64,000 bases of DNA. It comes from Lepidodermella squamata (lineage: Eukaryota; Animalia; Gastrotricha). The translations under genes and the position numbers were made by a program. Shown piece after piece: positions 25,419-57,822 of the stretch. The first letter of the stretch is position 1. Each line of letters starts with the position of its first letter. The notes beneath the pieces were generated by a model. The model did no database searches and was not told where the DNA came from. It saw only the letters and a list, made by a program, of their open reading frames with translations. The stretch spans positions 3,348,001 through 3,412,000 of the forward strand of contig JBLDXI010000032.1 of assembly GCA_047495785.1 (NCBI GenBank), given 5' to 3'.

Positions 25419-25939
25419 CACGAACCTATGCGATGAATTCAACTATTCTCTTGCTATATAACAGAATAAAGCTATAAATTAAAGTCGGTCTTACTATGCG
25501 GTTTTATGTCGCATTGCAGGATTTTCAGAGTGTGAACAGCTGTTTAAATGAGGTAGCTTTCGATATGAAATGCACTATATAGTCCTTAAGATAAATTTTC
25601 CGATAAAACACTCGCGTGATAGCCTTTAAAAATCTCATTGGTAGTTCTTTTATATTTTGCTATATTTTTAGTAGTATGAGACACAAAATTCGGGTATGTT
25701 TACGGGTGAAAAAACAATTTTTGAAAACTACAGCGCTAAAAAACACTGGTAGTAGCTGCCGTAATAGGGATAGCTACGAAAACACGGCGCTAAAGTAATT
25801 TTACTAACAGCACCGCGCTATTAAGGTGCAGGGTAAACTTATTACCTGCATTGTTTTCCTGTGTACTGCTGCTCTAGGTAAACGTTTACGACGAAGCAGC
25901 AGCGTATTAGAAAAAACCCAATTCCTTTGACATCTTAAT

Positions 25940-27948: not shown

Positions 27949-30900
27949 TCAAGTGAAAGCTTTGATAACGCCAACAATCCAGTCTTGGTAATGGTGGACT
28001 CGCGTGTAGACACCGGGAGCATTCGCACCAGCGCAGCCTTTTCCAAACGAAACAATGCCGTGAACTTCCCATCGGCCTTTAACATAGCAGGCCAAGGGGC
28101 TGAAAAATAAATAAATAAATGAGTTTTTTTATTAGTAAGGCTCGATTTTACCCTCCGCTATCACCTTGACAGGAATCGACACCGCCTTGCTGATAGCCGG
28201 CGCAAATCATTGATTTTTCAACAAGAGTGCCGTAGTAAAAATTCATATTGCGGCAGACTTCGTTTTCAATTATTGGGACATTTGCCTGATTAAGAAAACC
28301 ATCAGCTCCTGCATTAAACAAATAAATCTTTCCTAAAATTTTATTTTCTCATAATTTATACCTGTTCTTTGCGTTGAGCCCCATCCTACAACATAACACC
28401 TGTCGGCTAGTTTCGTGTCACGTGACGGCAGGCAAGCTGGTTTTGCTATGCTAGCTTCGAAATTAAGCGGCGTTTTCAGTTTGACCAGGGCGATATCGTA
28501 CGCTTTCGGATTGGTAACACGGGTGTTGTAGTGATGGACGAATATTTTATCGACCGGTGGGTATAGAAGGGGCGATCGCTGATCCCATGCGACTTTCGCA
28601 TGTGTCGAGTGCCGACCCATCACCACCTGCCAGCCCTTTGTTTTGCGCCGATTTTGCCGGAAACAATGAGCAGCTGTCAGTAGCCACTCTGAAAATTAAT
28701 AAAATAATAATAATTTGCCAATAATACTGATAAATTAATTATTAATTAATTAAATTAATTATAATTATGAATAATTAATTAATTAGCTCACACTCTTAAT
28801 TTATTGTTAGTATCTTAATTTTTAGGCGGAGTAAACTTATGAGTAACTAATTCATTGGCTCAAATATGCCTTTTCCAACAATTTCGAAGGTTAATGATCA
28901 ATTTGAAATAAAATAAATAAAAATAAATTAGCATAGGAATCTTCGTGATTTTCAAGTGTGAAGTTTCGAAATTTGGCTCCTCAACCCTAATTAGATCAAT
29001 CAATTCCTGAATCGATATTTGAATTATTCGAATATTTCAAGGAATAGAAATCTTACGTTCGTTCAGAATCGTAGCTCCACACAAGTGGTAGCCATTGAAT
29101 AGCAACTCCGCGGCGAATGGCCATGCGCCCGGCTGGGTCAACTGGCCTCCGACAATTCGATCCGCGAATTCATCACTAGGCGAATAAGCCGCTGGTCGGA
29201 AAATTGATTCTCCACATCGGCTACTCGTCAACGGTTCATAAGCAGGGTTTCTCGGGATGACAGGCCGCGGGACAACAACGTTGGTACTCAAACTTTTTAT
29301 TTTCTTAACCTCAGTCAAGACGAAGAATCCGAGTTCAAAGCCGCGGCCTTGATCTTTGCTGTCTGAATGGAAGGTGATTTCGACCTCTCCATGGGTCAAC
29401 GCGTTCATCGCCTCTCCGATAATCGGCCGGTTCGAATCGCAGTAACGGCCGCGCCTTTTTTTACCATTACTATCGAAAAAAGCAACCTCAAGCCAGTCAA
29501 GTTTGCAGCCATCCGAAGGCTGAACGCTGAAGTCGTAGAAGCGAATCGCCACGGTTTTAATCACATGATTCGGTTCGGTGATTTTAGGCCGAATGACCCA
29601 CACGCAGGTTAGGTTACCTGGGTAACGGAAGTAGCCGAAACCTGGCGATCGAATAGCCCCGCGAAGTTCGGTCAAAACCACTCCCCCACTTCTCTTGCAA
29701 GCAGGTTGGTTCAGCATTTCTCGAGCGGAAACTTGGGCAGTCGGCGGCTTGACGCGGTTCAATGATTTGGGCGTGGTTGTAGTCGGCATCATGGCTGGCT
29801 TCGAGGCTGTTAATTGCTGCGCCAATTCAATGCTAATCGCCTTCCAATAGATTCGAAACCCGGACCCGGTATTCGCGTTGTCAGATTCGAACATGACCAG
29901 AATAGAGTTTGTAGGCGTGATGAATGAACTCGGAACACTTTGGCCACATCGGCGGGCTAAAAAGGTCAGCTCACTTTCGGTTTCTTGATTAGTAGTGTCG
30001 TGATGAGCGTAGAAAGTGACACTGTCAAATGGGCAGTCTTCGGCAAACGCGTGGTCACCAGATTCGACGGCAAAAGTTTTCGAAAATCTCACTAAAATTC
30101 TCTGAAAAATAAAATAGGTAAAATAATTTAATATTTGACAATAAATAAATTATTTTAATTTTTTATTAATTTTTAATTAATTTTAAATATTTTTTACCGT
30201 TGTTGAAGCCGTAGTAATGTACCAGATACAGCGAGCATCGTTTTGATAGTTGTTCGGATAATTCATGCTGCCGATGATGCCATCGGTTCCTTCCTGGTAC
30301 CTCGGCGATCCGCAGCCAGATTCCATAGATTGCTCGACCTTCAATTTCTTCTTCGACCGCATTTCATCGCTCGCATCGCAGTTACTTTCATCGGCCGAAT
30401 TAGGGCAATCAACATTTGCATCACAGACGTAGGACATCGGAATGCATTTCCCACCTAAGCATGAAAAATAGCCTTCCTTACACATCGATTCTGTCTCATT
30501 TTTGCTAGTTTCATCCGCCGGGGTATTCGATGGATGAACTCGTTCGAACGAAATTTTGAATCGACGATGCGGTTGAGTTAGTTTCATTTCGATTAAAACT
30601 GATTGATAAGGTTGAGTTGTAATTGTTGGAACCGAGCCGTCGCCGCAATACTGCCCGATCAGCTCCTTCTTCTCGCCATCTAAATAGGAAATTTCCATTC
30701 GATTGAAAAAACACGGTTCGTAAAGGTCGTAATCAATTGATAAATCGGTATTATTAGCCGAATCGTTGCGAGGGCAAAGGTCGACCGGAGTTAGGTCAAA
30801 GTTGTCGAAATTTATTTTAAGGCTTCTAAGGAATGAAACTGGGATCGAGGAAACGTTGCCTTTCCCATCACCGAATTCAGGCAAGTCCAAGTTTTGAGCT

Positions 30901-31349
30901 TCACCTGGATCGAATTTCAGGAGCCAAGTGCAGCTAACTGGTGCGTCGACGCAAGGTTCTGTCGAGTTTTCGGCCAAATTTTCAGGTTGACTCATCAGAA
31001 TACCTTGATGCCGTTTAGCTAGCGGGATTTCAATTGATTGCAAACCCGTAGATTCAAAGCAGTAGCTCGTAATAGAAGTTTCGATTTCCAGATGTTCGAT
31101 AGCTGTTGGTGCTTCTGTAGTGATGTTCACCGCCGATAAATTTGTCGTAGGTTGTGAAGTTATGAGGCTGACATTTTCCGAGTTCTCTTTGATCGAAATC
31201 TCCGCTGAATCATTGCTGAGAATTGTGACATTTTCGATTGGCAATAAAAAGCTGTCTTCGATAATTTTCTTATTTATCGATAATGGCTCGGCGATCTCGG
31301 CTAAAACGTTTGAGGTTAGCAAAGCTAAAGTCAACGCGATAAAATTCAT
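27949..31349 (-). CDS. Secreted modular trypsin-like serine protease (signal peptide, CUB, LDLa, CUB, CUB, S1A)
   Basis: Signal peptide [17 protein letters not shown]; CUB motifs ([26 protein letters not shown]); LDLa [23 protein letters not shown]; activation site RIVGG; catalytic triad in LTAAHC, DIAL and [10 protein letters not shown]; last exon ends [13 protein letters not shown]...FT*. Confidence 0.93.
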
Positions 31350-37787: not shown

Positions 37788-40054
37788 TTTGGAACGATGA
37801 TCAGGTGAAGCTGAAGGCCTTATTGCAGGCGGATCCCTCGGTAAGTCTCAGTTTATACTGTATACTTACACATTTTCGCGGTAATCTTCAATTTCGCGAA
37901 TCGAATGCGATTTTTATTTTCGCTAAATTTTGAATTTACGAGGGCGATCTTCGAATAATTGCGTAAGCAAAAAATTTAAATTTTCGCTAATAATTTGAGA
38001 ATGGGTGTAGTGATCGACGGTATTTAAGCTAAGCAATTTTATCTCCACTAAATTATGTTTATCCGTAAAATTAATTTTATTTTAAGAGTTAGAGATAAAA
38101 ATAATTTTATTCTAGACTTCTGACCCCATTCCGATTGTTGCGTTGCCTGAAAATGTCCCTTTTCAACCCGGATTGTCCTGGTTTCGAGTTCAGATCAATA
38201 CAACACAAAAAACTAATATTTTTATTTTATTCTCTGGGAAGTTCGAGCTTAAAATATTTTGCGAAGCTCCAGAATCAGCCATAAATGCCGGTTTTGTTAA
38301 AATTACTAATGGGGAATATTAGGTTGAATAAAATTTAGCAGCTAAAATTTGATAAAAAATCAAGTTAAATTTTAAAAACGTGTCAGGTTTTTGATTTGTT
38401 ACTGTTGCGTCACAATAATGTGAACTTTTGACTCATTTTGAATTTTGAAGAGGACATTCAATCGGGTTATTCATTTTCGAAAAGCAAGCGAAAATGAAGC
38501 TCTTCAACCCTTTAGCTACCATCACGTCGTAACACGTGATCCGGGTATCTGTTACCAGTCCGGTCAAAAATTCACTTCTTTGCATAACATGAACAAGCAC
38601 GTTACACTTGGCCCATGTTCACACTAAATGTCATCTGTTAACCCCGTTATTTATTCGAAAAATGGGTCCAAAGATCACTCGCAAAACATGTGTCAAGTTT
38701 AGGCCTCTTTTACATAATTTATAGAAAATCAAGATGAGCTCATAAATTGATGAAAAAATACAGGTAGCCGCTGGATACTGATATGAAGCCCCAGGATTAT
38801 TTTCCCTGGAATTTTCAGAGTTCACCTTGATTTTTGAAAAAATTCTGAAAATCGGCCTCGTTTGTCGACCGTGAGTAATCAAGTGATTTGTGGTAGCTAC
38901 CAAGGTTTTGGAAACCCATTTATCACTTGATAAGCAAGTATAACGTGTTTATATTTTGCACGAACGCGTTAACTCGGGTTGGTTGGCAATATTCTCGAGC
39001 TTTTGGTTTTCAAAACTGTTCACCGCCAAAAGTGAGTAAACTCGGATCTAGAGACGTGTTTATTCATTTTTTGGAAAAATATCACGAGTTAACACATTCG
39101 GTCTAATACGAGTCGGTCCGGTAGCTAAAGGGTTAAGGCTATTACATATTTCATCTGTGGGAGAAGTATCGATTACCGATTTATCAATTTCCTACCAACA
39201 ATTTTGGGATTTTCACTATCAAGATAGAGCTTTCTCGAGCGAAACGGAAACCGCCATTTGGCAGAGATGCTCTTCAAGACAGTGGCATCAACCAGTAACC
39301 ACCGGACACCCAGGTTGAAGCGTCCCAGGGCCGAACCGGTAACAGATAGCCGGATCACGTGTGTTACGACGTGATGGTAGCTAAAAGGTTAGGGTAAAGT
39401 GTGCCGTCGAAAATTCACGTCAAAATGCTGGTCAAACCTGAAAGCCTTTATTACATCATACGCAGATTATGAAATAATGGCTAAGTTGAGATAATATGCA
39501 TTTTTTCTTAAGGAATTACGCTAAATAAATTAAAATCTTGGACCAAAATTATTTTTATCTTTAAGGAGAAAGGTCTAAAATAGCTTCGATCACTACACCC
39601 AATGTGTTTTTTGCTGATCTTGAATTCGTGAGCCAAGGTCGTCGAAATTTCACAAAAATAAAATTACCTCGAAAATGTGTACGTTAAACTCAGCTGAATT
39701 CAGTTAACATTGAATTTATCGCGATAATAGCTTGCTAATTGCGTTGACAACGACCGCGGAAATACGTCACCATTGCTAGTGGCAGCTATGAATGGCAAAA
39801 TAGGGTGCATGCGCATCCTCACGCGGCACGGTGCATCCCTGCGCCATGCGGATGCAGCCGGACGAACTGCTCTGCACTGGGCGGCTTGTCGCGGCCATCT
39901 CGAGGTTGTCAAGTACCTGGTCACCGAGTGCAGTTTCGACCCGCTGGAGACGTCACGCAAGGGCTACACCCCGGTTGATCTCAGCCGACGCAGCTGCATG
40001 ACAGCGGTTTACAACTTTCTGATGAGCGCAGCCAGCGGCATCACCCAGCCCTGA
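37788..40054 (+). CDS. Small ankyrin-repeat protein (first exon not identified)
   Basis: Exon 37788-37840 (WNDDQVKLKALLQADPS) splices in phase 0 over an 1890-nt intron to 39731 (LANCVDNDRGNTSPLLVAAMNG). Ankyrin motifs GRTALHWAACRGHLEVVKYLV and GYTPVDLS. Confidence 0.8.
37848..39692. mobile_element. Degraded foldback/inverted-repeat element spanning the ankyrin intron
   Basis: tacacattttcgcggtaat (37867-37885) pairs with 39663-39681 at 18/19. tgggtgtagtgatcga (38002-38017) pairs with 39586-39601 at 16/16. agataaaaataatttt also pairs. Confidence 0.6.
38508..39388. mobile_element. Non-autonomous piggyBac-like element (~65 bp TIRs), nested in the foldback element
   Basis: Left end CCCTTTAGCTACCATCACGTCGTAACAC... 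preceded by TCAA; right end ...GTGTTACGACGTGATGGTAGCTAAAAGG followed by TTAG. A further internal end GGTAGCTAAAGGG+TTAA lies at 39120-39136. CCC...GGG ends with TTAA flanks are piggyBac hallmarks. No transposase ORF. Confidence 0.72.
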
Positions 40055-40287: not shown

Positions 40288-40301
40288 GTTGCCATGATAA
40301 C
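40288..40301. promoter_or_regulatory. RFX X-box-like palindrome GTTGCCATGATAAC
   Basis: Matches the X-box consensus GTHNYY-AT-RRNAAC, but sits between two convergent 3' ends, so function is uncertain. Confidence 0.3.
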
Positions 40302-40413
40302 AGATTTTCTAAAATATGTTCGCGTGGGTTAACAAAAGGAGAAATAAACATGTTATCGCTACGGTTGATTCTTTCTCTTGGCAACGGGTTTCATGTGATT
40401 ATTCGTGAAATTC

Positions 40414-43400
40414 TCAGCAGGTGAAATGGTTGGGAGCCAGCATAGATCTGGCCTCGACCACGACTTTTTGAATGCCCTTATCAGCGTCGTTCTCGTCGAT
40501 TTCAATACTCCGTTTTTCGCTGAGGAATGCGGCCAGCCAGGCCAAAGGTTGGAAATTCGACTGCAACTTGACGGCTAAATACGGCTTCTGCTTCCGGCTG
40601 ACGAGTTGCGCCTCGAAACAGCTTGTCTCACTTTTGTTGTACTCCTCGTTGTAGCAAACCAGGACAAGGTCAGCTCGGTCGATTTCCTTGCTGAGCGCAT
40701 TCTCAATGCTGATATCAGATCGGAATGTGGACGAGTCGTAGCGGACTTCGTAGTCGAAATACTCTAGAGCCCGGGCAAGTTTCTCCATCAACGGCTTGCT
40801 TCGCTTCTTGCGCCGGCAGTAACTGATAAATATCACCTTACGGCGCACTTCAATTGCTACTTTGTTGTTCTGGCGTTTCCTGAGATGAATAAAACAAATT
40901 AAGGTGGAGTTTAAGAGTAATTGAAAATCTTACTTGAGGTAGATAAAACAGCCGACAATCCCTGAACCGATGAAAACGACTAAACCAATGAGCAAGTAGG
41001 CCCACCATTGAATTTCAGGGTCCGCCTGGGTTGTATTCTCAGAAGGCTTGTTGATAAATTTCTGCGGCAAGTAAGTTGGCCTTTCATGTTTGATGACAAC
41101 CGACGCGACCTCAACATAAGGCGTGATCGGCTGTCCATTAGTTGGCAGGAGTAACGAGCAGTCGACTAGAGCATCGTAAATCGGGCTGATCCATCGACCG
41201 CTCGAGTCGGTAACTGGGCCTGATTCCGGCGTGGAAGTCTGTATTTCCCCGTTCCAGCATTGGATGGCTGTTTTGAAGGGTGAAGTGACGTTCCTGCAAA
41301 CTGCTAGACACATTTTGACGCCATCGTCCGCGGCCGAATAGTCGCTGCTGCCAGCTTTTTCAGAATGGCTCAACGCAGATTTCGCCGTCTTTCGAAATAG
41401 CCGACCGCTGTTTCTCGCCGACGGTTCCTCGCCAGCTTGAGCACTAAGTCTGGCCTCCCCACGAAATTCTTCGGCTTGCATCAGCTCCGCATCACCGGAT
41501 TGAGCTGTGAGGGGCGCAGTCGTGAGGGGCGAGGTCGTCGTTTCGGATAATGGCGTAGAAGCAGTGGTTACCTCCTCAGGAATCGGGGAGCTGCTGATTT
41601 CAACATCGCCCGTAACTGGAGGCGTTTCAGTTTCTGCTGGTTGCGAATTTGTCGTTGACTCCTCGACTGATTCTTCCAACTTACGTTCCGCTAAGGGAGT
41701 CACTGGATCAGGTGTAGAAGTAGCGAATTGCTCTTCAATTACTGGCTCCGTGGTCAGCAGTTCAGATGCATCGGATTGCGAGGTTGTAGCAGCTTCCGTA
41801 GGCTGATTATCACCTTCTGTAACAGTAGTGGGCATTGTTTCAGTTTCAGTAACAGGTTGCGGTGTAGAGGTTATCACTTCACTGATAACAACCACATCTA
41901 CTCGGCTCGGAATTGAGCTGGTTTCTAGAAAATCTGCAACGGTCGATGGGGCTGTTGAACTGCCTTCACTATCGACTAAAATTCGATCGTTCAGACGGGC
42001 TCGATCTGCAACGGTTGATGGTGCTGTTGAACTACCTTCACCGTCGACTAAAATTAGATCTTTTAGATGGGTGCTGGAGCTGATTGTTGCTTCAGGTAGC
42101 GAATTTCCTTCAGTTTCTTCAGGGATGTTCATCTCGATGATCTCTTCAGTCTTCTCGGTAACCACAGGAGGCTGAGTTGTAGCTTCATAACGCGTGGATG
42201 CGGGAACTTCTGTGGATGGCATAGGGGTTGTTTCAGCTATGGTTGACGTAGACTCACGCGGCGTAGTCGGCGGAGAGGGGTTCGTGCTTGAGATCTCATC
42301 CAGCGGCTCCTGGAGACGAATTGCTGCCGGACTGTCGTTCAAACCAGTGCCGTAGTTGTCTTCAGAGGGGGGATCGTTAGCGGCGCCAGAATCTGAATCG
42401 CCGTTTTCTGCAGGGCCATCGAAACTACTCCTCTCGCCGCCCGAAGGGCCTGCGTTGTTAGCAGCAGCCGGCGTAGCTTTTTGGGTGGTCGGCGATTCAG
42501 TCGGAGGCGCATCAGTGATTCCATTCATAATCGTCGAGCAGATGAACCGATGCCGTATCTCGGTGAGATTTGCGCAACGCGTGCTCAGAAAGCCATACTC
42601 CCCGCCAGAATCAACGGTAATCGCCGAGCAACTGTAAGCAGCAGGCGCGACTGGCTCGTTGCGAACTATCCAGCCGTCAAACTGCATCATCGTACCGTCA
42701 AGGAAGAACCACTGCTTACTTGTTGCTCCAACCCAAATTTGCACGTTGTTTTGGTTCCATTGATACAGCAGCTTGTTAATCGTGTTCTGTGTGTACTGGT
42801 AGGGAATTTTCGCGAGTTGGCCACCCTTCAACCGACACGCCCGTTCGGCTTGACTCCAAGAAAGGGAGGTTGTTGCGTAGAGATGGTAGCAAGCGTTGAT
42901 GTCACAACTAATACTGTCGACGTCTGCTGAAGTAATGAAGATTTTAGGGTTGAATTCACAGATGTAAGGCAGAGGGACAGCGCATCCGACATCGACCCAA
43001 TAATTGCTCTGGGTACTGTCGATCTGAACAGCGGCACAACTTCCGAAAACCGAGGGACGGCCAGGCTGCCAGTGGTCGAAAGATCGCTCGGCCGACGAGA
43101 AGACAATGCTGTTGAACAGACCGCCGCACATTTGATCGGTCGATCCTGAGCAGGGTACGCTGCAGTTCGAGGCCGGGCGTTTCCAGATGAAGGTGTCTGA
43201 GCAGTAGCAGAATGAGCCGTGGTGAATCGCCGCGTACAACATGCTTTGCTTTGAGCAGAAATCCATGCATTTATCGTGGCTCATCAGCGTCGACGATGAG
43301 TAGGTCTTCAACTCAGATTTCTCTGTCCAGCCGTTTTCGTAACACCCCTGGCCCCGTAACGGTCCACTCTGCGGCGCCCACTGCCACGGCATGTTGATGT

Positions 43401-43683
43401 AACGCAGGCCGGTCATAACGTCAGACCAATTTCGGGCGTAGACAGCCTTAGCGAGCTGGAACGTTTGGCTCTGAGTTCGAACCGTTGCGAGTTGTTTGTT
43501 ATTCTTGGCGCAAAATGCCTGCGCGTCGTCGAACGAGTCGATGGTTCTGTCCTCATGAAACGAGTAGCAAATGTTCTCGTATTGCTGGTCAGTCGACTCC
43601 GAGCAAGTAATGGCCGATGTTTGGCTGGAAATTGAGGCTAGCACGCCGAGTATCAGGGCGATTGATGAGGGTTTCCGTTTCAT
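40414..43683 (-). CDS. Predicted 1071-aa single-pass receptor: signal peptide, C-type lectin with inserted WSC domain, second C-type lectin, Ser/Thr/Pro/Glu stalk, TM helix, TIR (TIR_2-type) domain
   Basis: Exon 43683-40934 splices in phase 2 over the 54-nt intron 40933-40880 to give CFIYLK-KRQNNKVAIEVRRKVIFISY. CTLD motifs (CYSF, AQAFC, LATV, WVDVGC..LPYICE; SWSQAERACRLKGGQLA, IWVGA); WSC (GCY...CMDFC...CYC...CSVPCSGSTDQMCGG); TM WWAYLLIGLVVFIGSGIVGCFIYL; TIR IFISY...YNKSETSCFEA...FQPLAWL. Confidence 0.88.
41932..42065 (-). repeat. 72-bp (24-aa) in-frame duplication in the receptor stalk (ILVDxEGSSTAPSTVAD x2)
   Basis: atctgcaacgg... occurs at 41932 and 42004. Confidence 0.85.
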
Positions 43684-45326
43684 GACGATCGGGACGATGA
43701 ATGACCAAACTGCCGACGAGGCTGGCAGGCGAACAGTTTGGTACGTTGCTAAACTACAGCAATGACAAGGCTTGATGGTGGAGCATATGCGGAAAAAATT
43801 GTATCTATATGTTATATCGGCGGGAAATTCTACTGTTATTATTATTATTTTTGCTCAGGCAGGCAAGCACATAGTGCCGGCGGTTCTACATTGATCGCGA
43901 CCACCGTCCACGTAGGGTTCATTAGTTATGCGCCGGCGAGATTAGGATATTGGAAATCATTTCGTCGTGATGTCGTCGGGGCGACCTCAACTCTCGTCTC
44001 ACTTGTTATGCATAGGATAGCGAGCGCGCCAGGCTCTGGCCGCCTCGTCTTCGATCGCCTGTGTGCGCCGTGTCGCCTAAAAAATAAAAAGGTGTTTTCC
44101 CAATGGCCGGCTGTGTATACCGATCGACGGCGCACTGATCGACGAACAGCTGCTCTGCTGTAGCCGCATCTTGGCGTAATTGCACTCGCTATCTTCACTC
44201 GGTTGTTGCGCGAAAAAGAATGCGGCTATAGCAACGACGCGACTATGATGCCTTGTGGTATACTTACGCCTACTTTGTACTGATGACGGTGTTTAATATC
44301 AAGGGTTAATTACACAGAAAAACACAACTTGCACCTGATATCGCTAGGCTTCTGCTGGTGCTGTTGATTTTTGCGCGATATATGGTATGGTCTCAACTTT
44401 GAATGTATATAGTGAATATTTTATTCGATTTTCACGGCGGAGTGATAACTGAGCAAATATCTGATAGTCGGATGGGCAATATATATCGTAACAGGTACGC
44501 TCCACACCTTTGTCTACACTATAACACTTCCTTGCACTGGGCAAAACAAATACCGAAATGGTACAATTTTTTCACCTTAGAGTTTGAGTTGTAGCACCGA
44601 TCTAATAACTGAACGTGGGAAAAATTGTTAAATAAAACGGTTGTAGGAAGAAACAGGAAGTTTCTTGCGTTACGAGTTCCGAACTTGAAGTCACGAATTT
44701 CGAGTGCACTCATCATCTACGAGTGTAAAGCATTGGGTTTCATTTATAAAGCATTGCAAGCGTTCTGATTTTCTCGTCTCAGGACAAGACGTGGTACGCG
44801 GACAAGTTTTGTCTGTGAACTAACTCCATAGAGCTCTATGACTAACTCAGACAAACCTGTGCTATAGTATAAGCTATAATAAGCATGATTGAAGTAAACC
44901 GCGGACAAGGGACACCGGCGCAGACGGCAGACTCAATCAATCAATAGCTCAGTCTGGCGAAGCTCGTCTATATCCGTTCCAGGCGTGTCCAGGTTGCAAT
45001 CCACCTAAATTTGGCGAAAACCCAGGAGAAGTATGCGCTCATCTCATAAGAATAAACTGGACAGACAGACGAAATTAAGCTTCATCATTAGCTGGATGGG
45101 GTTTCTTCACTTCTGACTCATCATGCTGGATATTTCGCGTTTGAAACTGGCATATCGAGATTTTATTTGTACAACCATCCGCCTCTCGGCGCTCTAGGCG
45201 CGATAACTTATGCCACGTAGATTAGGTTAAAGTAGTCGATAAAATATTCATGTGGAAGTTTTTAGAAAAATCTGAAGAATTTACAAAACGGAGTTTATAA
45301 AACATATTAAAAACGAGCGTGTGTAG

Positions 45327-48231
45327 TTAATTGGTGTCAAATGTCATCCAGTTCCTGGGGTCGATTTGGAGGTTGTAAGCGGGCTTCGGTTGATTTCGAA
45401 TATGCCACGCTGGGCAGCGTTTTTCAATTTCATGTGCTGTATCGGTAGAAGGTGTCAGGGTCGATATGTGGTCTAGATACTTGGCAGTTACGAGTGAGCT
45501 AGCGAGACAGCGTTCGCCGTATCTCTTTAGGGCTTCATCAAACTTGAGGTCGATGCCGGGGACTCCGGCAAATGCTATGACGTCGATAGGGTGGGTTTCG
45601 TGAGGAAGGCTCAAAAGGGCTCTCAGGCAGTAGGCTTGCAGGTCCACCAGGCGGCTCAAGGATGAAGGGCTCAGGCAGGACCAGGCAGGCGCACCGTAAA
45701 GTAGGATCGGCTCCAAAAGAGTCTGGTAAAACAAAACACAAACCCTTTTGGGTAACAACTTAGTTTTTAAAATCCCATACAGAGACCCGACGCGTTGTCG
45801 GATCTTTGACGCGATTACGTCGATGTGATGCGACCAGGACAATTGTGGGGTCAGATGCAGGCCCAGATACCGCACCTGGTTGACTTGAGGGATGGCTTGG
45901 CCATACAGCTCGAGATGGATTGAGGGAGGTGTATTTCCGTAGTGGCCGAAGATGATAGCCTCGCATTTTTGCGGGTTCAGCATTAGCCGCCATCGTTTAC
46001 ACCACCTTTCGGTGGCACTGAGCCTTTTTTGCAGGCGCTTGACACAGACATTGTAGTTGTCGCCATATGCCCAGTTGATGGCGTCGTCGGCGTAAGTGCC
46101 TTTGGCGACACGACGTGCTCCGTCATCAGGGTTACAGCTTTTGGGCTGCATGTCGTTGGCATAAAAAATGAAAAGAAGCGGTGACAAGGGCGAGCCTTGC
46201 GGCACGCCGCAATAGATGTTCCTCGTTGCAGATAGCTCGCTTCCCACTCGGACTTGAAATGATCGGCCACGCAGGAAGTCAGAGACCCACCTTACTATTG
46301 GCACCGGTACCCCCGACTGCTCTAGCTTGAGACGCAGCCCGTCGTGCCAAATACAATCGAAAGCTGCTTTAAAATCCAGTAAAAGTGCAACAAGTTTCTT
46401 ACGTTTCGCTATCGAGAGGCCCACATCGCTGATAAATAAAAATAAGGGGTCGTTGGTAGAATGTAGTGGCTGAAAACCGAATTGGTGTCGTGGTAGTAAA
46501 TTGTTCAGGATTAAAAATCGATATAAAAACTTGGCAACAACAATTTCGAGACCTTTTGCAATCGCTGGCAGAAGAGAAACCGGCCTGTAGGAGTCCGGCA
46601 ACCTCGAGTCCTTACCCTCTTTGAGAATTGGGATGATGATGGCGACTTTCCACTTTTTCGGTACATAGCCGCAGTTTAAGCTGAGCTGGTACAGATACCT
46701 CAGATGTTTTGCCAAATTCTTACCTCCATGTTTCAGTAGGACGTTAGACACGTTGTCGCGGCCCGGAGCCTTCCATTTGAGCGATTTCATCATCTGCCTT
46801 ACCGCCCATTTCGGGACCCTTACCTGGACCCGCTTGGGTATGACACCTAGGGGCTTCATTGCTTCGCTTTTTGACATGTCGTCGGTAGTTTGGTCCCAAA
46901 ATCGCTGGTCTTCTGTCAAATTTGAGGTTATCGGCGGACCTTTCAGAACATTACCAAATGTTTCGGCAAGTAGCTCGCATTTGGCAGCATCGTCGGTGAC
47001 TCCTAAGCCTTTCGAGTTGGTTAAGATAGCAATTTTACGGTTTCGGCGTCGTCCTATGAGACGGCCGTTTACGGCTTGCCACGCTTGCCTTGTCTGATGC
47101 TGTTTGAATAGTCTAGCTAGCCTTTGAAGAAATTTTTCACAAGCACGAAGTTTTTCTTGAGCAATCAGAATTTTGATTTCTTTGTTCAGCCTATTCACAC
47201 TGGATTTGGCTTCGGAGGAATTTGTTTTGTCAAAAAGTCGCTGTAATTTATTTCTTTGCTCTAGTAGCGTAGCAATCTCTTTTGTGAGACGCCAGCTTGA
47301 AAGCTTGTATTCCTTACTTTTGGGTATAGTTTCGGCTGCCGCCCGCTGGATTGCTTCGACAATCGCGTCTGAGTAAGTCTCGATGCTTTCGACCGGGTCT
47401 CCTGGCTTGGGTTTAACAGGGTCGGCGATCTCCGCGAGCCAATGCTTCAGCCGCTCCTCGAAGCGCGTCCAATTGGCTTTGAAAAAGTCGAGTCTAGGTT
47501 CGTAGTTGTTTGCCGCTTCCGGGGGGTCTGGACTGGCTCGAAAGTTCACTTTAATTCTTGTGGCACAGTGGTCGCTGCCGTACTTGTCCTCGACCACGGC
47601 CGGACCCGTAAGGAGTGGGAGCACCGCCTGATTCGCCAACCATATGTCGATTTGTCGACCATAACCACTGTGCGAGAAGTGGGTTGGGGTGCCGTCGCTC
47701 ATCAGAGTGTGACCTTCCGAGTTTAGCCATGCAGCCAGGGCGGTTCCTGCTGGGTTTTTGCTGATGGGGTCGGATAACGTGGGGTGCCAGCAGTTTAGGT
47801 CGCCGGCAAATAAGCATGGTTGGTTTGGGTCGGTCGTGCCACCTAAAGCTATGTTCAAAAAAGTAAGATCAAGAGGGTAATTTGGAGAGCTGTATCCAGT
47901 TGCAACTGTGAGCTTTCGACCGTTTGAATCTGCCACTTTGAGCGCGAGCCACTCGCTGTGGTCAGTTGCGTATTGGAATGCTTCGACCACTCGAATTGAG
48001 TTCTTCACTGCTATTGCCACGCCGCCGTACATAACATTATTTGCTGCCTTTTCTTTCCTATCTAACCTGAAAACAGTAAAATTTGGGATGTGAAAATCAT
48101 CGTTATCGTCTAGCCATGTTTCGTTGATGAGCAAAATATCTAACATCAATGTTTGTATCAAAAAAAATAATCTCAGCTAATCTCAACGTTACTTTGCAAT
48201 GACCCGAATTCCATTGCCCTACCCAACACAT
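45327..48231 (-). CDS. LINE ORF2: AP endonuclease + reverse transcriptase (one-base frameshift near the 5' end)
   Basis: APE motifs INETWL, GGVAI, GDLN, SDH; RT motifs KAPGRD, YRPVSLL, QFGF, LDFKAAFD, GVPQGSPLSP, YADD, YLG. The main ORF is 45327-48161; the expected QWN start motif lies in another frame beginning at ATG 48231. Confidence 0.93.
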
Positions 48232-49811
48232 GATGACTTATCGGGAGGGGTCGATTTGTTACCTTGATTGTTCAAGTGCTTGGCCGTCGCGGGTTTACTG
48301 GGTTTACCTGCTGGGACATCCGTGCTTCGGACATAGTCCCCTGAAGTGATCTGGCCCCACTCTCTTGCGGCCTCGTCGTGTGTGGGTGCTGGCGTCTGCA
48401 TGGTGGCTAGGAAATTTGACATTGTGCGAAAGTTCACCTCAAGGCGGGATATTGCGTCGGCAAGTGTCTGGAGCTTGGAGTGAAGATCGCCTAGCAGCTG
48501 GCTCCTTAGCTTCTCGACGACAAGTGGGGCAATCTTCGTGGCGATATCTTCCATTAGCCGGTCGCTGTGAAATATCTGTTTGGGCTGGATTTGCCAGGCC
48601 GGAGTTATTGGTGGAGGAGCTGGTATGAATGTCGGTTGTAGCGGCGGCGACGCCTCGTCAGTAGGAGCTCCTGTGTCTTTTCTACCTTGAATTTTGGCAA
48701 TTTTGGAAAGAACACGCTCTTCGTCACGTTTGACTGCATTAACGACTGCCTTGCAACCACCCCAGTTCGCCGAGTGTGGACCGTTGCAATTAGCGCATTT
48801 ACGAGCACTCGGCTTGTCCTTCAGTTCGCAATCTCTGGTGTAATGCTCGCCGGCACACCATCCGCATTTTTTGACGGTTGATCGGCAGTGCTTGGTCAGA
48901 TGATCGTGGCTTTGACAAGCGTTGCACCTGATGGGGTGGTGAACAGCTTTCAACTCCTTGCCTTTGATCCTGCATATGCTGAAAAGTAACCCATCTCCCT
49001 TGGTTAATTGCTTCGCCAGCTCCACTGTTTTCATGTAGCAAAATACTTTACCATGGGTAACTGCGACGTCTTCGACCTTCTCGGCCCATTTCGTCTTTAT
49101 CGCTTCTGCTGAGATCGTGCTGGGGAACCCTGTGCATTCGACAGCTCGCCCTTCAGCCTGCGCTGTTTTACGAGCATCGTTGGACGTTGGTTTACGTTGG
49201 TTTGTCTTGGCTTCATCTGGGAAATATTCATAATATTTCTCCGTGCGATGAACTCGAATGCCTCCCCCGAAGGCGTCTTCCGCCCAGCCTTTAAGAATCA
49301 TAGCATCAGATGCCATTTCGGGGGTTTCAAAGGTGATTCGGGCTCCTCCCATGCCAAGGACGACCAGTCTGGAAATTCTGACCTTACCGTCAGTTGCTCT
49401 GTCGAGTTCCGTGATCATGTCGCCGTCATTTTTAAAATCGGGCGAAATGTCGTCGATGACTACCACGCACTTTTCGCGCGCGCGAGCGGCAGCTTGCGCC
49501 GCCTTCTTGGCATCTTCGCTTTCCCGTGATTCCTGTTCGTAGGTCGGAGTTTGGCTCATCGAGGATGCCCTCCCCCTGGTGATGGTTCCGGGAGTTTTGC
49601 GGCGAAGATCTTCGTTGGTTACTGGCTTTTTTGCCGTAGTACCTGCGCCGTTAATTACCTTTGTCGCTGGTTCTCCGGTTGGTGATGGCTGCGAGGCCCT
49701 CGACGGTGACTGTTGTCTGCTCGCTGGCGTGGAACCGCTCCCGCCGATTGCCCCAGGCAGCAGGGAACCCTTGATGGGGATGGAGGGGTTTGAAGGGTGT
49801 GCTTCAGACAT
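48219..49811 (-). CDS. LINE ORF1 gag-like nucleic acid-binding protein
   Basis: Three CCHC knuckles (CNACQSHDHLTKHC, CGWCAGEHYTRDC, CANCNGPHSANWGGC) directly upstream of ORF2. Confidence 0.9.
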   Translation of the reverse strand: MSEAHPSNPSIPIKGSLLPGAIGGSGSTPASRQQSPSRASQPSPTGEPATKVINGAGTTAKKPVTNEDLRRKTPGTITRGRASSMSQTPTYEQESRESEDAKKAAQAAARAREKCVVVIDDISPDFKNDGDMITELDRATDGKVRISRLVVLGMGGARITFETPEMASDAMILKGWAEDAFGGGIRVHRTEKYYEYFPDEAKTNQRKPTSNDARKTAQAEGRAVECTGFPSTISAEAIKTKWAEKVEDVAVTHGKVFCYMKTVELAKQLTKGDGLLFSICRIKGKELKAVHHPIRCNACQSHDHLTKHCRSTVKKCGWCAGEHYTRDCELKDKPSARKCANCNGPHSANWGGCKAVVNAVKRDEERVLSKIAKIQGRKDTGAPTDEASPPLQPTFIPAPPPITPAWQIQPKQIFHSDRLMEDIATKIAPLVVEKLRSQLLGDLHSKLQTLADAISRLEVNFRTMSNFLATMQTPAPTHDEAAREWGQITSGDYVRSTDVPAGKPSKPATAKHLNNQGNKSTPPDKSSCVG

Positions 49812-51683: not shown

Positions 51684-51930
51684 CCGATCTAGTAGCCGCT
51701 ATACTCCACACTACCGCTATATTTTGTCTTCATCATTTTTTTCGAATAAATCAAGTTTTGTTTTTTGCCACGTGTTTTGTATTAATTGAAGGCTGAGGTG
51801 CGCGAACCAGCCATGGAGACGGACTGATAATAGCGCCGAAAAAGAAGACATAAATCGATAAAATATTGCGCCAGTGTTGCGAAAAGCTTCGATACCACCA
51901 ACTTTGTTTTTTTATTATCATCGCTTGATT

Positions 51931-54900
51931 ATGACTAAAATCGACGTCGAGTCAGGTCAACTCTCTAACGCTGCCGATCTTCGGAAGAAAAATGCCGCCC
52001 TTCGAAGTTTCGTAAGAGACAACTTCAAACTTCCGAACTCTTCGGATGCTAACAAGAGTTATGGCTATGTGGCAAGTGGAACTGACATCGTCCGGCCTTA
52101 TCTTCGCATTCACGGTGGGCACATGGACCTGAACCACATGGCGCACGTGTACAATGTGGTGAGCAACTTCTGGAAATTCCCGCAGCCCCGTGCTATCGTT
52201 GAAATAACCGGTTCAGCCCACCCGGCTATAAATAGACGAGACGAGTTGGCGGCATTGATCAAGTCTAAACATAAAACTTGGTTTCCTGACGGATCCTGGA
52301 TCATCACAGGCGGATGCAATAGCGGGGTAATGAAACTATTTGCTGATTCTATAACGCTCGCACGACGAAATTCGACTCTGTCGCCCACACCGCGGACAGT
52401 TTGCATGGGCATCGCTACGTGGGCGACGCTTGATTCGAAAGATCTTAAACTAATGGAATCAGCTGATGGATGTATCGTGCGACACGATGAGGGTCATCCA
52501 AATACGACTGAGGGAAATAATAAGAAACTTAACCTAGGTCACGACTGTTTCATCTTGGTTGACAAGGGCGAAACTGGCTACAATCAAGAGGTTGATTTTC
52601 GCAACTTGTTTGTCGACTATTTGTCCGAACTTGATCGAAGTGTTGACATTCCGGTTGTTCTCCTCCTAATCGGCGGAGGCTCTGCGAGTTTGAAAACTGT
52701 TTATCTAGCTGTAACTGTGAATGAAGGTGAAGCTCAAGCGTCACTAGACATAGAACCGAGGCAGGTTGTGGTTTTCAAGGGCAGTGGCCGAGCGGCTGAT
52801 GCTATTCAAACAACGATAGAAATGTTCAGCCGTGATAAAAACATACGCTTCGACGAATTCGTTGCCAAGTTCCCAAGTGATCTGTTAACTGAAATCTTGG
52901 GTGGAGCTGATTCCGACAAGTACAACGATGATGAACTAAGAAAGAGGGTGTTCGAACATTTGGCAAACATCGCCATGAGGCGGCACATGGTTCGCATTGC
53001 TGACCCTTTCAACGAGCCGAATAGCTTCCGAGTTTTTGAGCCAGTAATTATCTTCAATTATGACACGACATTTTCATGTCTCTGTATTTAGGAGGATTCA
53101 AGTTGTACCAGAACTGAAAAATTCGTCGCCGACAATTTCGAACACAGACAATGCCGGAAGTTTCAAGCGATGAAGAAAAGTGATATCAAACGATTTCTAC
53201 AAAATCGAATAGAATTGTAAGTCGATTTAAAGCATAAACCTGACTTGAGTTTTTTATTCAGTTTTCCGGATAAAAATCTTGTTTGCAAATGTGGTCGGCC
53301 TAACCACAAACCAACAAGTAACGAAGACGTCCTAGTTGAAAATGACACGTTTGAAACTCAACTGGCTGAGTGTAACACCGCTCGATGTGGAACCCTGAAG
53401 TTCGAAGCTGACCACAGTGATCCTAAATATTTCTCTCACGATTTGGCGTCTTTCGTGCCCTGCCACAGCAAGTTCTTACGGCTCTACTACGACGACTCAA
53501 AGCACGATCACCCGCTATTTTGGCTCAAACTTCAAGCCCTAATCACTGAGTACTGGAACGTCCGGCGGCCTCAAGTGTTGATCGAAGTTACCGGATCTGC
53601 GGAAGATATGCGGCATATTAACCCGAAAATTCTGCAAGATCTGCAGTTCGGCATCGTTCAGGCGAGTATTAAATCGAAGGCTTGGCTAATTACCGGGGGT
53701 ACGAATTGTGGCGTGATGAAGCTTGTTGGCGATGCGTTGGCTGACTTCCGGTCAACACATGAAGGCGCGGGTGTGCCTTGCTTCGGAATATCCACGTGGG
53801 GCATGCTCGAGCACAGAAATTCGATATTCGCACCGGAAAGGTGCAGGCAAGGAGTCGTTGAGTATCCTTTCAAAAACGATCAAGACTACGTCGCGAGAAA
53901 AGATCGGGGCAATCACTACGAGCTTAATCCCGGTCATGACTACTATATCTTCGTTGACACGGGCAAGGAAGAGCAATTCGGGCAGGAGATCGTTTTCCGT
54001 AATAAGCTGCTCAATCACTTCTCCCGGTTGCCTCCGTACAAGAGTATAGTCGAAAACAGCCAAACACCCCTCGTGCTACTGGTCATTAGCGGAGGTCCGG
54101 GAACACTTGGTACAGTAGAGGAAGCTGCTAATTCCGTAATATTAAACAACTCCACTGCGATTGAAATTTCATTCTAATATACCTATAGGCAGAAAGAAAT
54201 CAACGTAGACCCATTGTTCTGGTAAAAGGTTTCGGGGGTTGTGCTGATTTCTTGTCATACGCCTACTACAGTGTGACTGACAAGACGAAAACTGTGGATG
54301 AGTGGCTGGCTTTGATGAAGCAAGATAGCAATTTCATTGACAAATTGAATGTCGCAAAAAAGTGGAGCAACGTAGAAGAGGATTTCAGAAAGGAGGCAGA
54401 GAAATGGCGCCAAAGGCTATCAGCTGATCTTGATTCCGTAAAATGAGCAAAAATTCATCTAAATTTATTGACACTTAAATTGTTCATAGGTAACAGTTTT
54501 AGATATGGAACGTTGCTCGTTAACCGACGAAGGCCGGTTCCTTGAAGATGCGATCCTAGATGGCATTTTCAAGCTGAAACGGAAGGAGAAAGAATCGATC
54601 GAAAGTACTTTTGAGCTCTCCCTCATTTGGGACCGGGTTGATTTCGCAGAGAAAATAATCGGTGATAGCGTGCTATGCGAAGTCATCCGGGCTTCGAAGG
54701 ACACAAGACTGCTGACCAAAGCCATGACTATCGCTATCAAAAAGAACCAGCCAGAACTGTTTCAGCTGTATGTAGAAAGCGGTTTGGTCGAACCCCTCAG
54801 TTTCTTTCGTGGACTTTCCAGCAAACGCTCTGCTGTGATTTTCCACAAGGTGAGCTCCCCTTTTCAAGTTCTACCTTTCACACTGTTTTTATAGGTCCTA

Positions 54901-57212
54901 CAACACCCGACAACATGGGGAGATAGGGGACCCATTTCTCAGAGTCACTTGCACCTTCTTCAATACTTGAGTGGTTATGAACTTGTAAGCTTTTCATGAC
55001 TTGCTGACTCATTCATATTGGCTCTTTTTTACAGCGAAGAGAGTCGAGCTTCAAGCTGAATTATGAAATTGAAGACATTTCTATCCCTAAGCTGGAGGAT
55101 ATGGAAGACCTGATGACGTCAGTCTTTGATGTAAGACAGGGCTATTCCGAACGAAGGAACCTACCGCGTTTCATCGACTTGGTGAAAACTCGGCAATCCG
55201 AACTGACGATGAATGACGAGTACAACACGACGCTGAAAAATCTGATCATGCTCCAGCTGTTTCTATGCCGAGATTCTTTCGCTGTTGTAGCGTGGAAAGT
55301 TGCCATGAAAAGTGACTTCCTTGGCACGGCTGTCATGGCAAGCATTTTCCTATCAAATTTAGCTATAATAGCCCGCAAGATCCATCGGCATGATCTGGCC
55401 TCTGAGTATACAACATTGGCAGAGTAATTTTTAACAAAAATGTGCCTTGCCTTGTTTGATTCCATTTCCCTTCCTTAGGAAATGGGAAAATCGAGCGGTT
55501 GGATTGATTGACTATTTAGCTCAGGGCCAGCAGGAAGATCTTTACGATATCCTTATGAGAGGATTAAGAGTCTGGGACAATGCTAACGTTCTTTGTATGG
55601 CTTACGTCAGCAAAAAACTCGGCGTAATCGCAGCACCTTCAGTCCAGGTTGTCCTTGAAACAATTTGGAAAACAAGATGGAGTGAAAAGTACGCCATTGA
55701 CGGCGGGTCGAACTGCTTCGAATCCATTGCTAAGAAGAAATCAAAGACCTATCCTGAGGTTGAGCCGAGCTTGAGTCGGGCAAAAGAACCAGTCAAAGAC
55801 TTTATTTATCCTTACAATATCCCTCCGATAGCCAAGTTTGTGCTGTACTCAATCAGCCTGCTTATTTTCCTGTTCCTGATTCTTGGCAAACTGGTTCACA
55901 TGCCGCACGACTCAGACAAATGTGATGCTGAGTCACTTGGAATCGTGGTTGCGACATGGCTTTGGGGTTTCAGTTTCACCGCCGGGGCAGCTTTGGAGGT
56001 AAGCCCTTCCTTCTAGCATTATACCTGGCTTATAATGGCTCTTTAGTTTGCATTATCCCATATACTGTCAACGGACAACGCGATTACAATGATGGCCCAA
56101 GGATTTTTGACAGTTTCAGCTAGTCTTACATGGAACGCTTGCATGCGTGGTGATGTCAAGTAAGGAACCCTTGAAAATCTGTTTACATGGATCTAAATTA
56201 GTCGTTATTGAAGGTCCGACTCATTCCTTATCTATGAGCGATTCAACACGGCAAAGACACTATACGCCCTATCTTGCCTGCTATTTTGGTTCAAGTTGTT
56301 TCGAATCCTTCAGATTAACAAAACTATCGGGCCTAAAGTCAAAGCGCTTTTTGAAATGGTAAGATTATTATCTGCATGAATTAATTTTACGAACAATTTG
56401 CTTGCAGTTCAAAGATGTGCTCTTCTTTTGTGTCCTTCATTTTATCATGCTTTTCGCATTCGCCGGACCTATCTATGCCCTAATGAAGTTCAATCGCACA
56501 AGTGAAAAAGAATCATGGTCATTAGAGGAACTTGTAGCGTTGATTGGAAAGGTCGTCAACTACCGCTGGTGGAACATCGTTGCTGTCGCCTTGGACGATA
56601 GCAAGAGGCTGTCCTACGGCAGTGGAGCGTGCGATAAAGCCATGTCTATCGAATCTGACGAGGAGACAGCGGCTTACTTTAGACAGTACGGTCCTGGAAT
56701 TGTTGAGCCGGTTAATCATACTCAGGTCTGCAACTACTCGAATCTTCTGTCGGGCATACTACTAATGATCTATCTGATCGTAACGAATATCATCCTCCTT
56801 AACATGTTGATAGCAAACTTCGCATCAACGGTCGAACGGAATCGCATTTCAGCTGAAATCATGTGGAAGTTTGAGAGATATCTTCTGATTCGAAGTTATA
56901 CCGAAAAAGCCATCCTGCCGCCTCCTTTCAGTCTCGTAGAAATACCTGTTCTAGCTGTTCTGAAACTCTGGAGAAAGTCCAGAGGCCTTAGCAGTCCATT
57001 TGGTTATTTTTTAAAGAAATTATGAAAAAGAAATCCAAACGTTTATTTTATTGTTTTTAGCAATAACCATCCCAGATGGAGCATTGGTGCAAAAGTTGGC
57101 AACAAGTGATGACGGTTCGAACTTTGAAAAGAACAAATCAGAGCTTTACAAGCATCGCTATATGCAATTAAACAAACTGGAATGCGAAGCTGTTTGGGCT
57201 GTTGCAGGCTGA
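51931..57212 (+). CDS. TRPM: TRPM-family channel, paralog 4, with two tandem SLOG/MHR1-2 domains and a truncated C-terminus
   Basis: SLOG-1 (EITGSA, WIITGGCNSGVMK, LNLGHDCFILVD) splices in frame via exon 53092-53216 to CKCGR plus SLOG-2 (WLITGGTNCGVMKLVG, LNPGHDYYIFVD, GGPGT). Then MHR3-4, TM helices, pore NYRWWNIVAVALD, LLNMLIA, TRP box WKFER; stop at 57210-57212. Confidence 0.9.
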
Positions 57213-57822
57213 AATTTTTCGAACTTTTTCAAACACAAATGTTCTTCAATCGTTGAAATAAAGTGGTAACCGGCGGAACGGTTCCTTTTTTGGTTTGTGA
57301 TTAGGTTTGAAAATGTTGGGTGATTAGTTATTCTTCATTAGTTTATTTATCAATTATTAATCTCATTAATGACATCGCCCAGAGCATATTGATATTAAAA
57401 GTACACCATGGTCGTGATCATTAAAATCTACTAAGGCATGGAACCTGGATGTGATTCACAGCCGAGCGGCTTGGAGCCTTGCAGGAATCATTGCATGCTG
57501 AGGCAAATAAAAAAACTAGTCTAAATAATTAAAGGGCAGTATGGATTGACCGTAGTCATAACACATGTGCTTTCACGACTGGTTCGATGAATGGCCCGGT
57601 CGATAGTCCTAGTAATTTACTATAGCGCGCAATAGTTCCTTCTATTTATGAGGCAAGGACGCAGCTCCATGGCTACAAAAAATAAATAAACTTTTCACTG
57701 AGCCAAAACTACAGACACCGGTTGAATGCCGACACCGTGCTGAGCTAAATCAGAGATTTGAGCTGTAAATCTCAAACAAAATTCATAATTTGTATTGCAA
57801 ACAACTCAAAGGTGAATGCTCA

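Follow-up and report, generated by a model that had tools for sequence, protein, structure and literature searches.

The 64,000-nt window analysed here, which corresponds to positions 3,348,001 to 3,412,000 of the forward strand of contig JBLDXI010000032.1 (assembly GCA_047495785.1) of the gastrotrich Lepidodermella squamata, contains at 40414-43683, on the minus strand, what is very probably a single two-exon gene encoding a type I membrane receptor of 1071 residues. Read from the outside to the inside of the cell, the protein consists of a signal peptide, a C-type lectin-like domain (CTLD1) in which a WSC domain is nested, a second such domain (CTLD2), a long stalk, a four-cysteine module, a transmembrane helix and a TIR domain of the TIR_2 type. 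The gene is intact and transcribed, and we put the probability that this gene model and architecture are correct at about 0.95. All coordinates below refer to the window, and all features of the receptor lie on its minus strand.

In the genomic DNA the gene is split into two open reading frames (ORFs), one of 917 amino acids (40930..43683) and one of 144 amino acids (40414..40848), which the preliminary description had joined into one spliced receptor, naming splicing at the junction as the test. The predicted intron, at 40880..40933, has a length of 54 nt, is of the GT-AG type (GTAAGA...CAG) and is in phase 2, and joining 40934 to 40879 produces one in-frame coding sequence of 3216 nt. Exon 1 (40934..43683) encodes residues 1-916 and two bases of the Lys917 codon, and hence the whole ectodomain and the transmembrane helix; exon 2 (40414..40879) encodes a basic stop-transfer linker and the TIR domain, and ends with the stop codon at 40414-40416. 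On the minus strand, the coding part of exon 1 ends in ...TAC CTC AA, followed by GTAAGA of the intron; 54 nt past the donor, the 3' splice side reads ...TCATCTCAG and is followed by G AAA CGC of exon 2. The spliced product thus reads ...CFIYLK and then KRQNNKVAIEVRRKVIF, and across the junction (GIVGCFIYLK-KRQNNKVAIEVRRKVIFISY) a hydrophobic helix passes into a basic stop-transfer stretch and then into the TIR domain. With the intron retained, the protein would terminate directly after YLK at a stop codon.

Evidence that the junction is spliced comes from two public sequencing runs that contain the stretch, here called X1 and X2, whose contigs were placed on positions 40300-43800. X2 is DNA-like: its depth is even, within the intron and upstream of the gene as well, and it is contiguous across the intron. 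X1 is cDNA-like: the SMART template-switch oligo is found as one loose end, and its depth is zero at intron position 40931 and upstream of 43693. One X1 contig of 133 nt was placed on 40772-40896 with four mismatches and eight unplaced letters (GCCGACAA). When the spliced sequence, 40772-40879 plus 40934-40958, is forced onto the unspliced DNA, the same mismatches (at 40880, 40885, 40887 and 40888) and the same eight letters are obtained, and the contig is therefore identical to the spliced form; it was misplaced by the aligner because of a resemblance between the final 17 nt of exon 1 and those of the intron. Another X1 contig begins at 40933 and is preceded by four unplaced letters, which is the pattern expected from a spliced molecule. 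X1 contigs cover exon 1; at this other end of the gene, their coverage ends about 10 nt upstream of the ATG (43693), and one contig carries the SMART oligo at 43614; the receptor mRNA may be trans-spliced near its start codon.

When the cytoplasmic part of the receptor was used as query in an exhaustive HMMER search, one close relative was obtained, the metagenomic protein P0003 (E 2e-52, 54% identity), and the alignment runs from the second residue past the splice junction. In P0003, the four-cysteine juxtamembrane motif, a transmembrane helix starting with WWAY, the basic linker and the TIR domain lie within a single uninterrupted ORF. A sister of the P0003 contig (L003, 5308 nt, also metagenomic) in addition carries the ectodomain upstream, in the same domain order and with an orthologue identity of about 53%, and its ORFs are joined in frame by a different intron, namely a 70-nt GT-AG intron located inside the stalk. 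Hence, the whole architecture is kept in a second species, with intron positions differing between the two. The orthologues share 61% of residues in the WSC domain, 55% in CTLD2 and 62% in the TIR core, and 22% in the stalk, whose counterpart in the orthologue is shorter by about 250 residues. Synonymous sites are saturated between the two, and identity per domain was used in place of the ratio of nonsynonymous to synonymous substitution rates; because of this saturation, the conservation of the domains reflects selection. L003 also contains a second gene 1.6 kb downstream (4173-4867), consisting of two adjacent ORFs and resembling a small secreted C-type lectin.

These data bear on the possibility that we are dealing with two separate genes, or with a dying gene, whose in-frame join is due to chance. 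In its favour, it is only a tool's guess that X1 is RNA, the evidence consists of contigs and not of raw reads, rare intron-retaining molecules are possible, and the intron length of 54 nt is a multiple of three. Against it stand the exactly spliced contig together with the zero intron depth in X1, the presence of transmembrane helix and TIR domain in one ORF of the orthologue, the amino-acid identity of 52-62% in all domains despite saturated synonymous sites, and the fact that every indel in the stalk is in frame. This explanation is already contradicted and we give it hardly any credence; the proposed joining of the two ORFs into one receptor is borne out.

The ectodomain begins with a predicted signal peptide (residues 1-24; 43612..43683), in which MKRK is followed by a hydrophobic core and SQTSA; the prediction is based on reading the sequence and on a hydropathy peak at residue 8, and an orthologous sequence (P0001) also starts in a signal-peptide-like manner. 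Pfam analysis of the 917-aa ORF identified Lectin_C (three stretches, E 3.6e-15), WSC (E 8.6e-12) and a weak Xlink match. The N-terminal half of CTLD1 (residues 26-111; 43351..43608) contains Cys27, 39 and 58, and its residues 49-104 correspond to Lectin_C profile positions 3-59; the C-terminal half (residues 189-245; 42949..43119) contains Cys216, 234 and 242, and its residues 202-244 correspond to profile positions 68-107. The WSC domain (residues 112-188; 43120..43350) lies between these halves. It matches PF01822 with 45.6 bits (cut-off 27.8) over profile positions 2-82 of 82, and contains the eight conserved cysteines (114, 139, 143, 159, 161, 174, 178 and 186). CTLD2 (residues ~258-384; 42532..42912) has six cysteines and contains the best Lectin_C stretch (273-359), with an E-value of 8.5e-9 when scanned alone. 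Both domains therefore combine a match to the Lectin_C profile with the six-cysteine pattern of long-form CTLDs, distributed as three plus three in CTLD1 and as six in CTLD2. CTLD1 would accordingly be a long-form CTLD into which a WSC domain has been inserted at the start of the long-loop (ligand-loop) region. It should be noted that this nesting rests on the Pfam profile coordinates and the cysteine pattern, and that the AF2 model of the ectodomain, made from a two-sequence alignment, has a pLDDT of 33.

The preliminary description had called the receptor glycan-sensing. Reading both CTLDs by eye, we did not find the EPN/QPD and WND sugar-binding motifs in either: the corresponding sites read RPS and WVD in CTLD1, and EPV and FLS in CTLD2. 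The orthologue has identical or near-identical substitutes at these sites (RPS/WQD and EPV/FTS, respectively). Therefore, glycan binding through the CTLDs is not indicated. Carbohydrate might be bound by the WSC domain, and glycan sensing as such is conjectural.

The lectin-like head is followed by a stalk of about 400 residues (386-790; 41314..42528), 38% of which are Ser, Thr or Pro. This makes the term mucin-like, which had been applied to it, a fair one, with the reservation that the stalk is also acidic. It contains a 72-nt (24-aa) tandem duplication at 41932-42071, detected by TRF, and X2 contains in-frame length variants of the stalk, consisting of a 36-nt repeat step and a 9-nt insertion (41603-41638 and 41697). 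The stalk is thus length-polymorphic, yet remains in frame. Next comes a juxtamembrane module (41014..41313) with four cysteines (792, 796, 809 and 842) in the motif MCxAxCRNVTS...IQCW...CSLL, which is kept in the alignment with the orthologue and matches no Pfam family. The transmembrane helix (residues 893-916, WWAYLLIGLVVFIGSGIVGCFIYL; 40936..41007) corresponds to the sole strong hydropathy peak (2.44), and its WWAY is kept in the orthologue. The single strong peak is in line with type I topology and, by sequence reading, the KKRQNNK that follows the helix fits the positive-inside rule.

This layout raises the question of whether the receptor serves immunity at all. The fungal cell-wall sensors Wsc1-3 have a WSC head, a stalk very rich in Ser/Thr, one transmembrane helix and a signalling tail that is short, and the receptor might, in a similar way, sense contact, matrix or mechanical strain, or mediate adhesion, with the TIR domain being only an intracellular coupling module. 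The receptor does have the order WSC, Ser/Thr-rich stalk and transmembrane helix, its CTLDs lack the EPN/QPD and WND motifs, and its stalk varies in length between orthologues and between runs, which would suit a spacer or spring. However, the fungal proteins belong to another kingdom and have neither CTLDs nor a TIR domain, so that the resemblance is one of layout only and homology is limited to the WSC domain; moreover, the great majority of TIR domains are linked to immunity or cell death. We therefore consider a non-immune role unlikely.

The cytoplasmic TIR domain (residues ~931-1064; 40438..40839) was identified by a match of the 144-aa ORF to TIR_2 (PF13676; 47.2 bits, cut-off 28) covering profile positions 1-119 of 122. 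No Pfam match at E below 0.1 was obtained to PF01582, the TIR family of Toll-like receptors (TLRs), and the BB loop, which reads RYDSSTFRSDIS, lacks the Pro-Gly of Box 2 (RD..PG). An alignment of 61 members of the TIR family was used both for an AF2 model and for a profile search. The model has a pLDDT of 92 and shows strands beta-A to beta-E and helices alpha-A to alpha-E in the order of the TIR fold. Solved TIR structures match it with Z-scores of 14-16.6 and root-mean-square deviations of 2.2-3.0 over about 130 residues (Foldseek, VIA-align; Foldseek E ~1e-5). These matches include both enzymatic TIRs (SPARTA TIR-APAZ, RPS4, RUN1, SARM1 and Cat1) and scaffold TIRs (Hydra TRR-2, IL-1RAcPb, IL-18R-beta, MAL and MyD88). 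In sequence searches of the PDB, the single TIR sequence gave no TIR match, whereas the family profile did.

The closest sequence relatives of the domain are animal TIR_2 proteins of rotifers, lancelet, snail and tunicate, and the nearest Atlas clusters are bacterial TIR_2/ThsB-like ones, together with rotifer and haptophyte TIR_2. Among 142 relatives, a hydrophobic segment or transmembrane helix directly before the TIR domain was seen only in the orthologue. Those relatives that were scanned comprise TIR-only proteins and fusions of TIR to kinase, ARM or ubiquitin domains; two of the kinase-TIR fusions are receptor kinases. These two metagenomic proteins (P0123 and P0150) are receptor tyrosine-kinase-like and have a C-terminal tandem pair of TIR_2 domains, behind an ectodomain with 5'-nucleotidase-C and ANF-receptor domains in P0123 and with DUF285 in P0150. 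Thus, TIR_2 domains on receptor tails occur elsewhere, in a further unusual mode of attachment to a surface receptor.

The preliminary description had also assigned enzymatic activity to the receptor, on the grounds that the TIR domain retains the catalytic glutamate of NAD+-hydrolysing TIRs. The residue is where it was said to be: Glu1006 (codon 40612..40614; E89 of the 154-aa query) lies in YNKSETSCFEA at the S-x5-E spacing, within the predicted alpha-C helix (84-95 in the AF2 model), and is kept in P0003. The family profile, in which 60 of the 61 sequences have Glu at this position, aligns it with the Glu of the RPS4 and Roq1 TIR motifs, so that it occupies the catalytic position. The family signature reads hIMISY...VWxD...S..C..E..YA...GWLG. 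Four residues before the Glu, SARM1 and AbTir have a Trp (W638 and W204, respectively). The receptor TIR has Thr at this position and Ser at the BB-loop Gly position of the family, and therefore does not have the Trp and Gly of enzymatic TIRs. We considered the missing Trp as an argument against catalysis and rejected it, since active members of the family also lack that Trp (Table S4 of Hurieva et al., bioRxiv 10.64898/2026.04.20.719644). Assignment of the TIRs of this table to the family was done by reading the sequences and not by tool alignment. Five family members are active, namely those of a lancelet, a bdelloid rotifer, a coelacanth, a herring and an oyster (rows 139, 144, 145, 146 and 153); they made cyclic ADP-ribose (cADPR) or depleted NAD+, and their activity was Glu-dependent (bioRxiv 10.64898/2026.04.20.719644).

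Several observations nevertheless speak against inferring catalysis from the Glu. Firstly, the profile column of this residue gives an equally good alignment to the Glu of a TLR TIR, and more than 70% of TIRs keep the residue, which makes it the default state (PMC7075850). Secondly, among 61 animal TIRs that have the Glu, no more than 12 were active, making a cyclic ADPR in Escherichia coli, and TLR2, IL-1R9 and IL-1R10 keep the Glu, which faces outwards, without detectable activity (bioRxiv 10.64898/2026.04.20.719644). Within the family itself, as delimited by reading Table S4, activity was seen in about 5 of the 15 TIRs tested, and some 10 were inactive. Thirdly, the TIR domains of the receptor and the orthologue lack several residues that hardly vary in the family (W46 is R, C86 is S, Y92 is L, and both G113 and G116 are A); G54, the majority residue (33/61), is Ser in the receptor TIR, and all five active members keep W46, the Trp of the VWxD motif. 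Finally, the modelled fold is equally near to enzymatic and scaffold TIRs and does not discriminate between the two functions. The Glu is thus necessary but not sufficient for NAD+ processing and is not diagnostic of it: the statement that the catalytic Glu is retained is right as to position and carries little weight as to activity.

With these reservations, the following mechanism can be proposed. The receptor would be a lineage-specific cell-surface sensor, whose CTLD/WSC head binds a multivalent ligand or surface. Binding would cluster the receptors and thereby bring the intracellular TIR domains together, and the assembled TIRs would use Glu1006 to convert NAD+ into a cADPR- or ADP-ribose (ADPR)-type product, as several family TIRs do in E. 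coli. We favour Glu1006-dependent NAD+ processing over the other possible outputs of the receptor, but only as a tentative proposal, with a chance somewhat short of even.

Alternatively, the clustered receptor may nucleate TIR-TIR assemblies with cytosolic TIR proteins, as TLRs and interleukin-1 receptors (IL-1Rs) do with MyD88 and MAL, in which case the Glu would be kept for structure or as part of an interface, and NAD+ chemistry would have no physiological part. The modelled fold matches MyD88, MAL, IL-1RAcPb, IL-18R-beta and Hydra TRR-2 with Z-scores of 14.6-15.9, on a par with the enzymes, most of the Glu-bearing animal TIRs tested are inactive, and the receptor TIR has lost several family-invariant residues. 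The distribution of conservation is also relevant here: the orthologues share 83% of residues in the block that runs from beta-B via the BB loop to alpha-C, versus 26-32% in the C-terminal half of the TIR domain. This block, which with the BB loop and alpha-C contains the classical TIR-TIR interface, forms the NAD+ pocket in enzymatic TIRs as well as the main interface in scaffold TIRs, and either reading fits. However, coupling to MyD88 in the manner of TLRs is unlikely, because there is no match to PF01582 and the BB loop (RYDSSTFRSDIS) lacks Pro-Gly, and this TIR family does include active enzymes. Scaffold signalling is in our view an appreciable possibility, though clearly below an even chance. 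The claim that the receptor signals enzymatically rather than through a MyD88 scaffold, which had been put forward, is therefore an open alternative and not a finding, given that the fold matches both kinds of TIR at Z 14-16.6.

The surroundings of the gene suggested a further step to the enzymatic mechanism. In the window, the receptor gene is surrounded by at least 4-5 genes, or parts of genes, for TRPM-type channels that have SLOG (LSDAT_euk) and TRPM2-like domains, at 1664-3490 (-), 6207-9255 (+), 14174-16594 (-), 51874-54177 (+) and 55447-62802 (+). SLOG domains sense TIR-made nucleotides in bacterial Thoeris systems, and the TRPM2 channel is gated by ADPR; therefore, a functional link between the TIR domain and the TRPM-type channels is thinkable. 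The receptor would then be a surface-ligand-gated NAD+ cyclase or hydrolase at the inner plasma membrane, whose ADPR/cADPR-type product opens the TRPM2-like SLOG channels encoded by neighbouring genes and lets Ca2+ enter. If true, this would constitute a direct path from extracellular ligand via nucleotide messenger to Ca2+ entry, parallel to the TIR-SLOG logic of Thoeris. However, little can be concluded from the proximity of genes in an animal genome, and we regard this extended scheme as very improbable.

The remaining neighbours are as follows. A non-LTR retrotransposon (LINE; 45327-49811, minus strand), with a 944-aa ORF containing AP-endonuclease and reverse transcriptase preceded by a 530-aa ORF1-like frame, lies about 1.6 kb upstream of the receptor start codon. 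An ankyrin-repeat ORF (39773-40054, plus strand) is convergent on the 3' end of the receptor gene; on the orthologue contig L001, an ankyrin gene is found on the opposite (5') side of the receptor. The depth of X1 over 40300-40416 is three times that over the coding region, and overlapping 3' untranslated regions of the ankyrin ORF and the receptor are suggested. Ordinary neighbours at 20901-23276 (+), 24126-27296 (+) and 29037-31349 (-) are a UPF1-like helicase (two ORFs), two ORFs with a diacylglycerol-kinase catalytic domain and a CUB/LDLa protein. An Rfam scan of the 64-kb window gave no match.

Animal TIR receptors are generally taught as sensors with a leucine-rich repeat (LRR) ectodomain, in the case of TLRs, or an immunoglobulin (Ig) ectodomain, in the case of IL-1Rs. 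Like these, the receptor described here has a signal peptide, an ectodomain, a single transmembrane helix and a cytoplasmic TIR domain, and the approximation of TIR domains by ligand is the natural model for it. It differs from TLRs in having no LRR ectodomain, as Pfam found only Lectin_C, WSC and weak Xlink matches, and from the IL-1R family in having no Ig domain in the same scan; it differs from both in that its TIR matches PF13676 and not PF01582 and has a BB loop without the Pro-Gly box. The contrast that had been drawn with TLRs holds for the ectodomain, whereas with regard to chemistry it is weakened by the report that the TLR4 TIR produces cADPR (bioRxiv 10.64898/2026.04.20.719644).

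As regards the TIR domain itself, the best sequence relatives are the members of the animal TIR_2 family of rotifers, molluscs, lancelets and fish (Hurieva et al., bioRxiv 10.64898/2026.04.20.719644), with which it has the Glu, the S-x5-E spacing and the absence of a Trp before the Glu in common, although identity to them is no more than 20-30%, and W46, C86, Y92, G113 and G116 have been lost from it. With SARM1/TIR-1, AbTir, SPARTA TIR-APAZ, RPS4 and RUN1 it shares the TIR_2-type fold (Z 14-16.6) and the Glu at the homologous alpha-C position; unlike SARM1 and the bacterial and plant NADase TIRs, the receptor has no SAM, ARM, NB-ARC or Ago domain and no Trp at Glu-4, and identity is 10-19%. 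The Hydra proteins TRR-1 and TRR-2 are likewise invertebrate membrane TIR proteins with neither LRR nor Ig domains, and the TIR of TRR-2 is a top structural match (Z 15.9). They have almost no ectodomain, and none that senses, and have been proposed to act in pairs with separate LRR proteins (PMC6321704). In the receptor described here, by contrast, sensor head and TIR domain are part of one chain.

The word-index protein search with the 917-aa ORF returned an orthologue fragment and a weak match to a mannose receptor, which was the only named match. WSC and CTLD both occur in the ectodomain of polycystin-1. Together with KREMEN, polycystin-1 represents the animal WSC proteins, and the macrophage mannose receptor is a CTLD receptor; all of these lack a TIR domain, and the receptor further differs from them in that its WSC domain is nested inside a CTLD. 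The nearest Atlas cluster to the ectodomain is a rotifer cluster with WSC plus Lectin_C and without a TIR domain, which we note as a lead only. Two scans of Joint Genome Institute metagenomes, in which the alignments of the TIR domain and of the ectodomain, respectively, served as queries, gave no further relatives. The combination of CTLD or WSC with TIR was not found in the protein word-index search, in the Atlas, or in the portion of the domain table of bioRxiv 10.64898/2026.04.20.719644 that was covered, and we found no published description of a CTLD-TIR, lectin-TIR or WSC-TIR protein. The view that this architecture corresponds to no named receptor is thus upheld within the literature and protein searches made.

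Invertebrate genomes are known to hold large, shuffled TIR repertoires (PMC6321704). To these the present gene adds a documented case, transcribed and kept in two species, of a CTLD/nested-WSC head on a mucin-like stalk joined to a TIR domain of the TIR_2 type found in SARM1 and bacteria. The isolated TIR domain, with a Glu1006 mutant as control, would offer a compact construct with which its function can be tested. If the TIR domain is not catalytic, the receptor would be one more example of the free shuffling of TIR modules in invertebrates, which is useful for annotation and not surprising. If, on the other hand, the TIR domain does have catalytic activity, the membrane receptor would itself convert an extracellular signal into a nucleotide messenger, an idea that has now been raised for TLR4.

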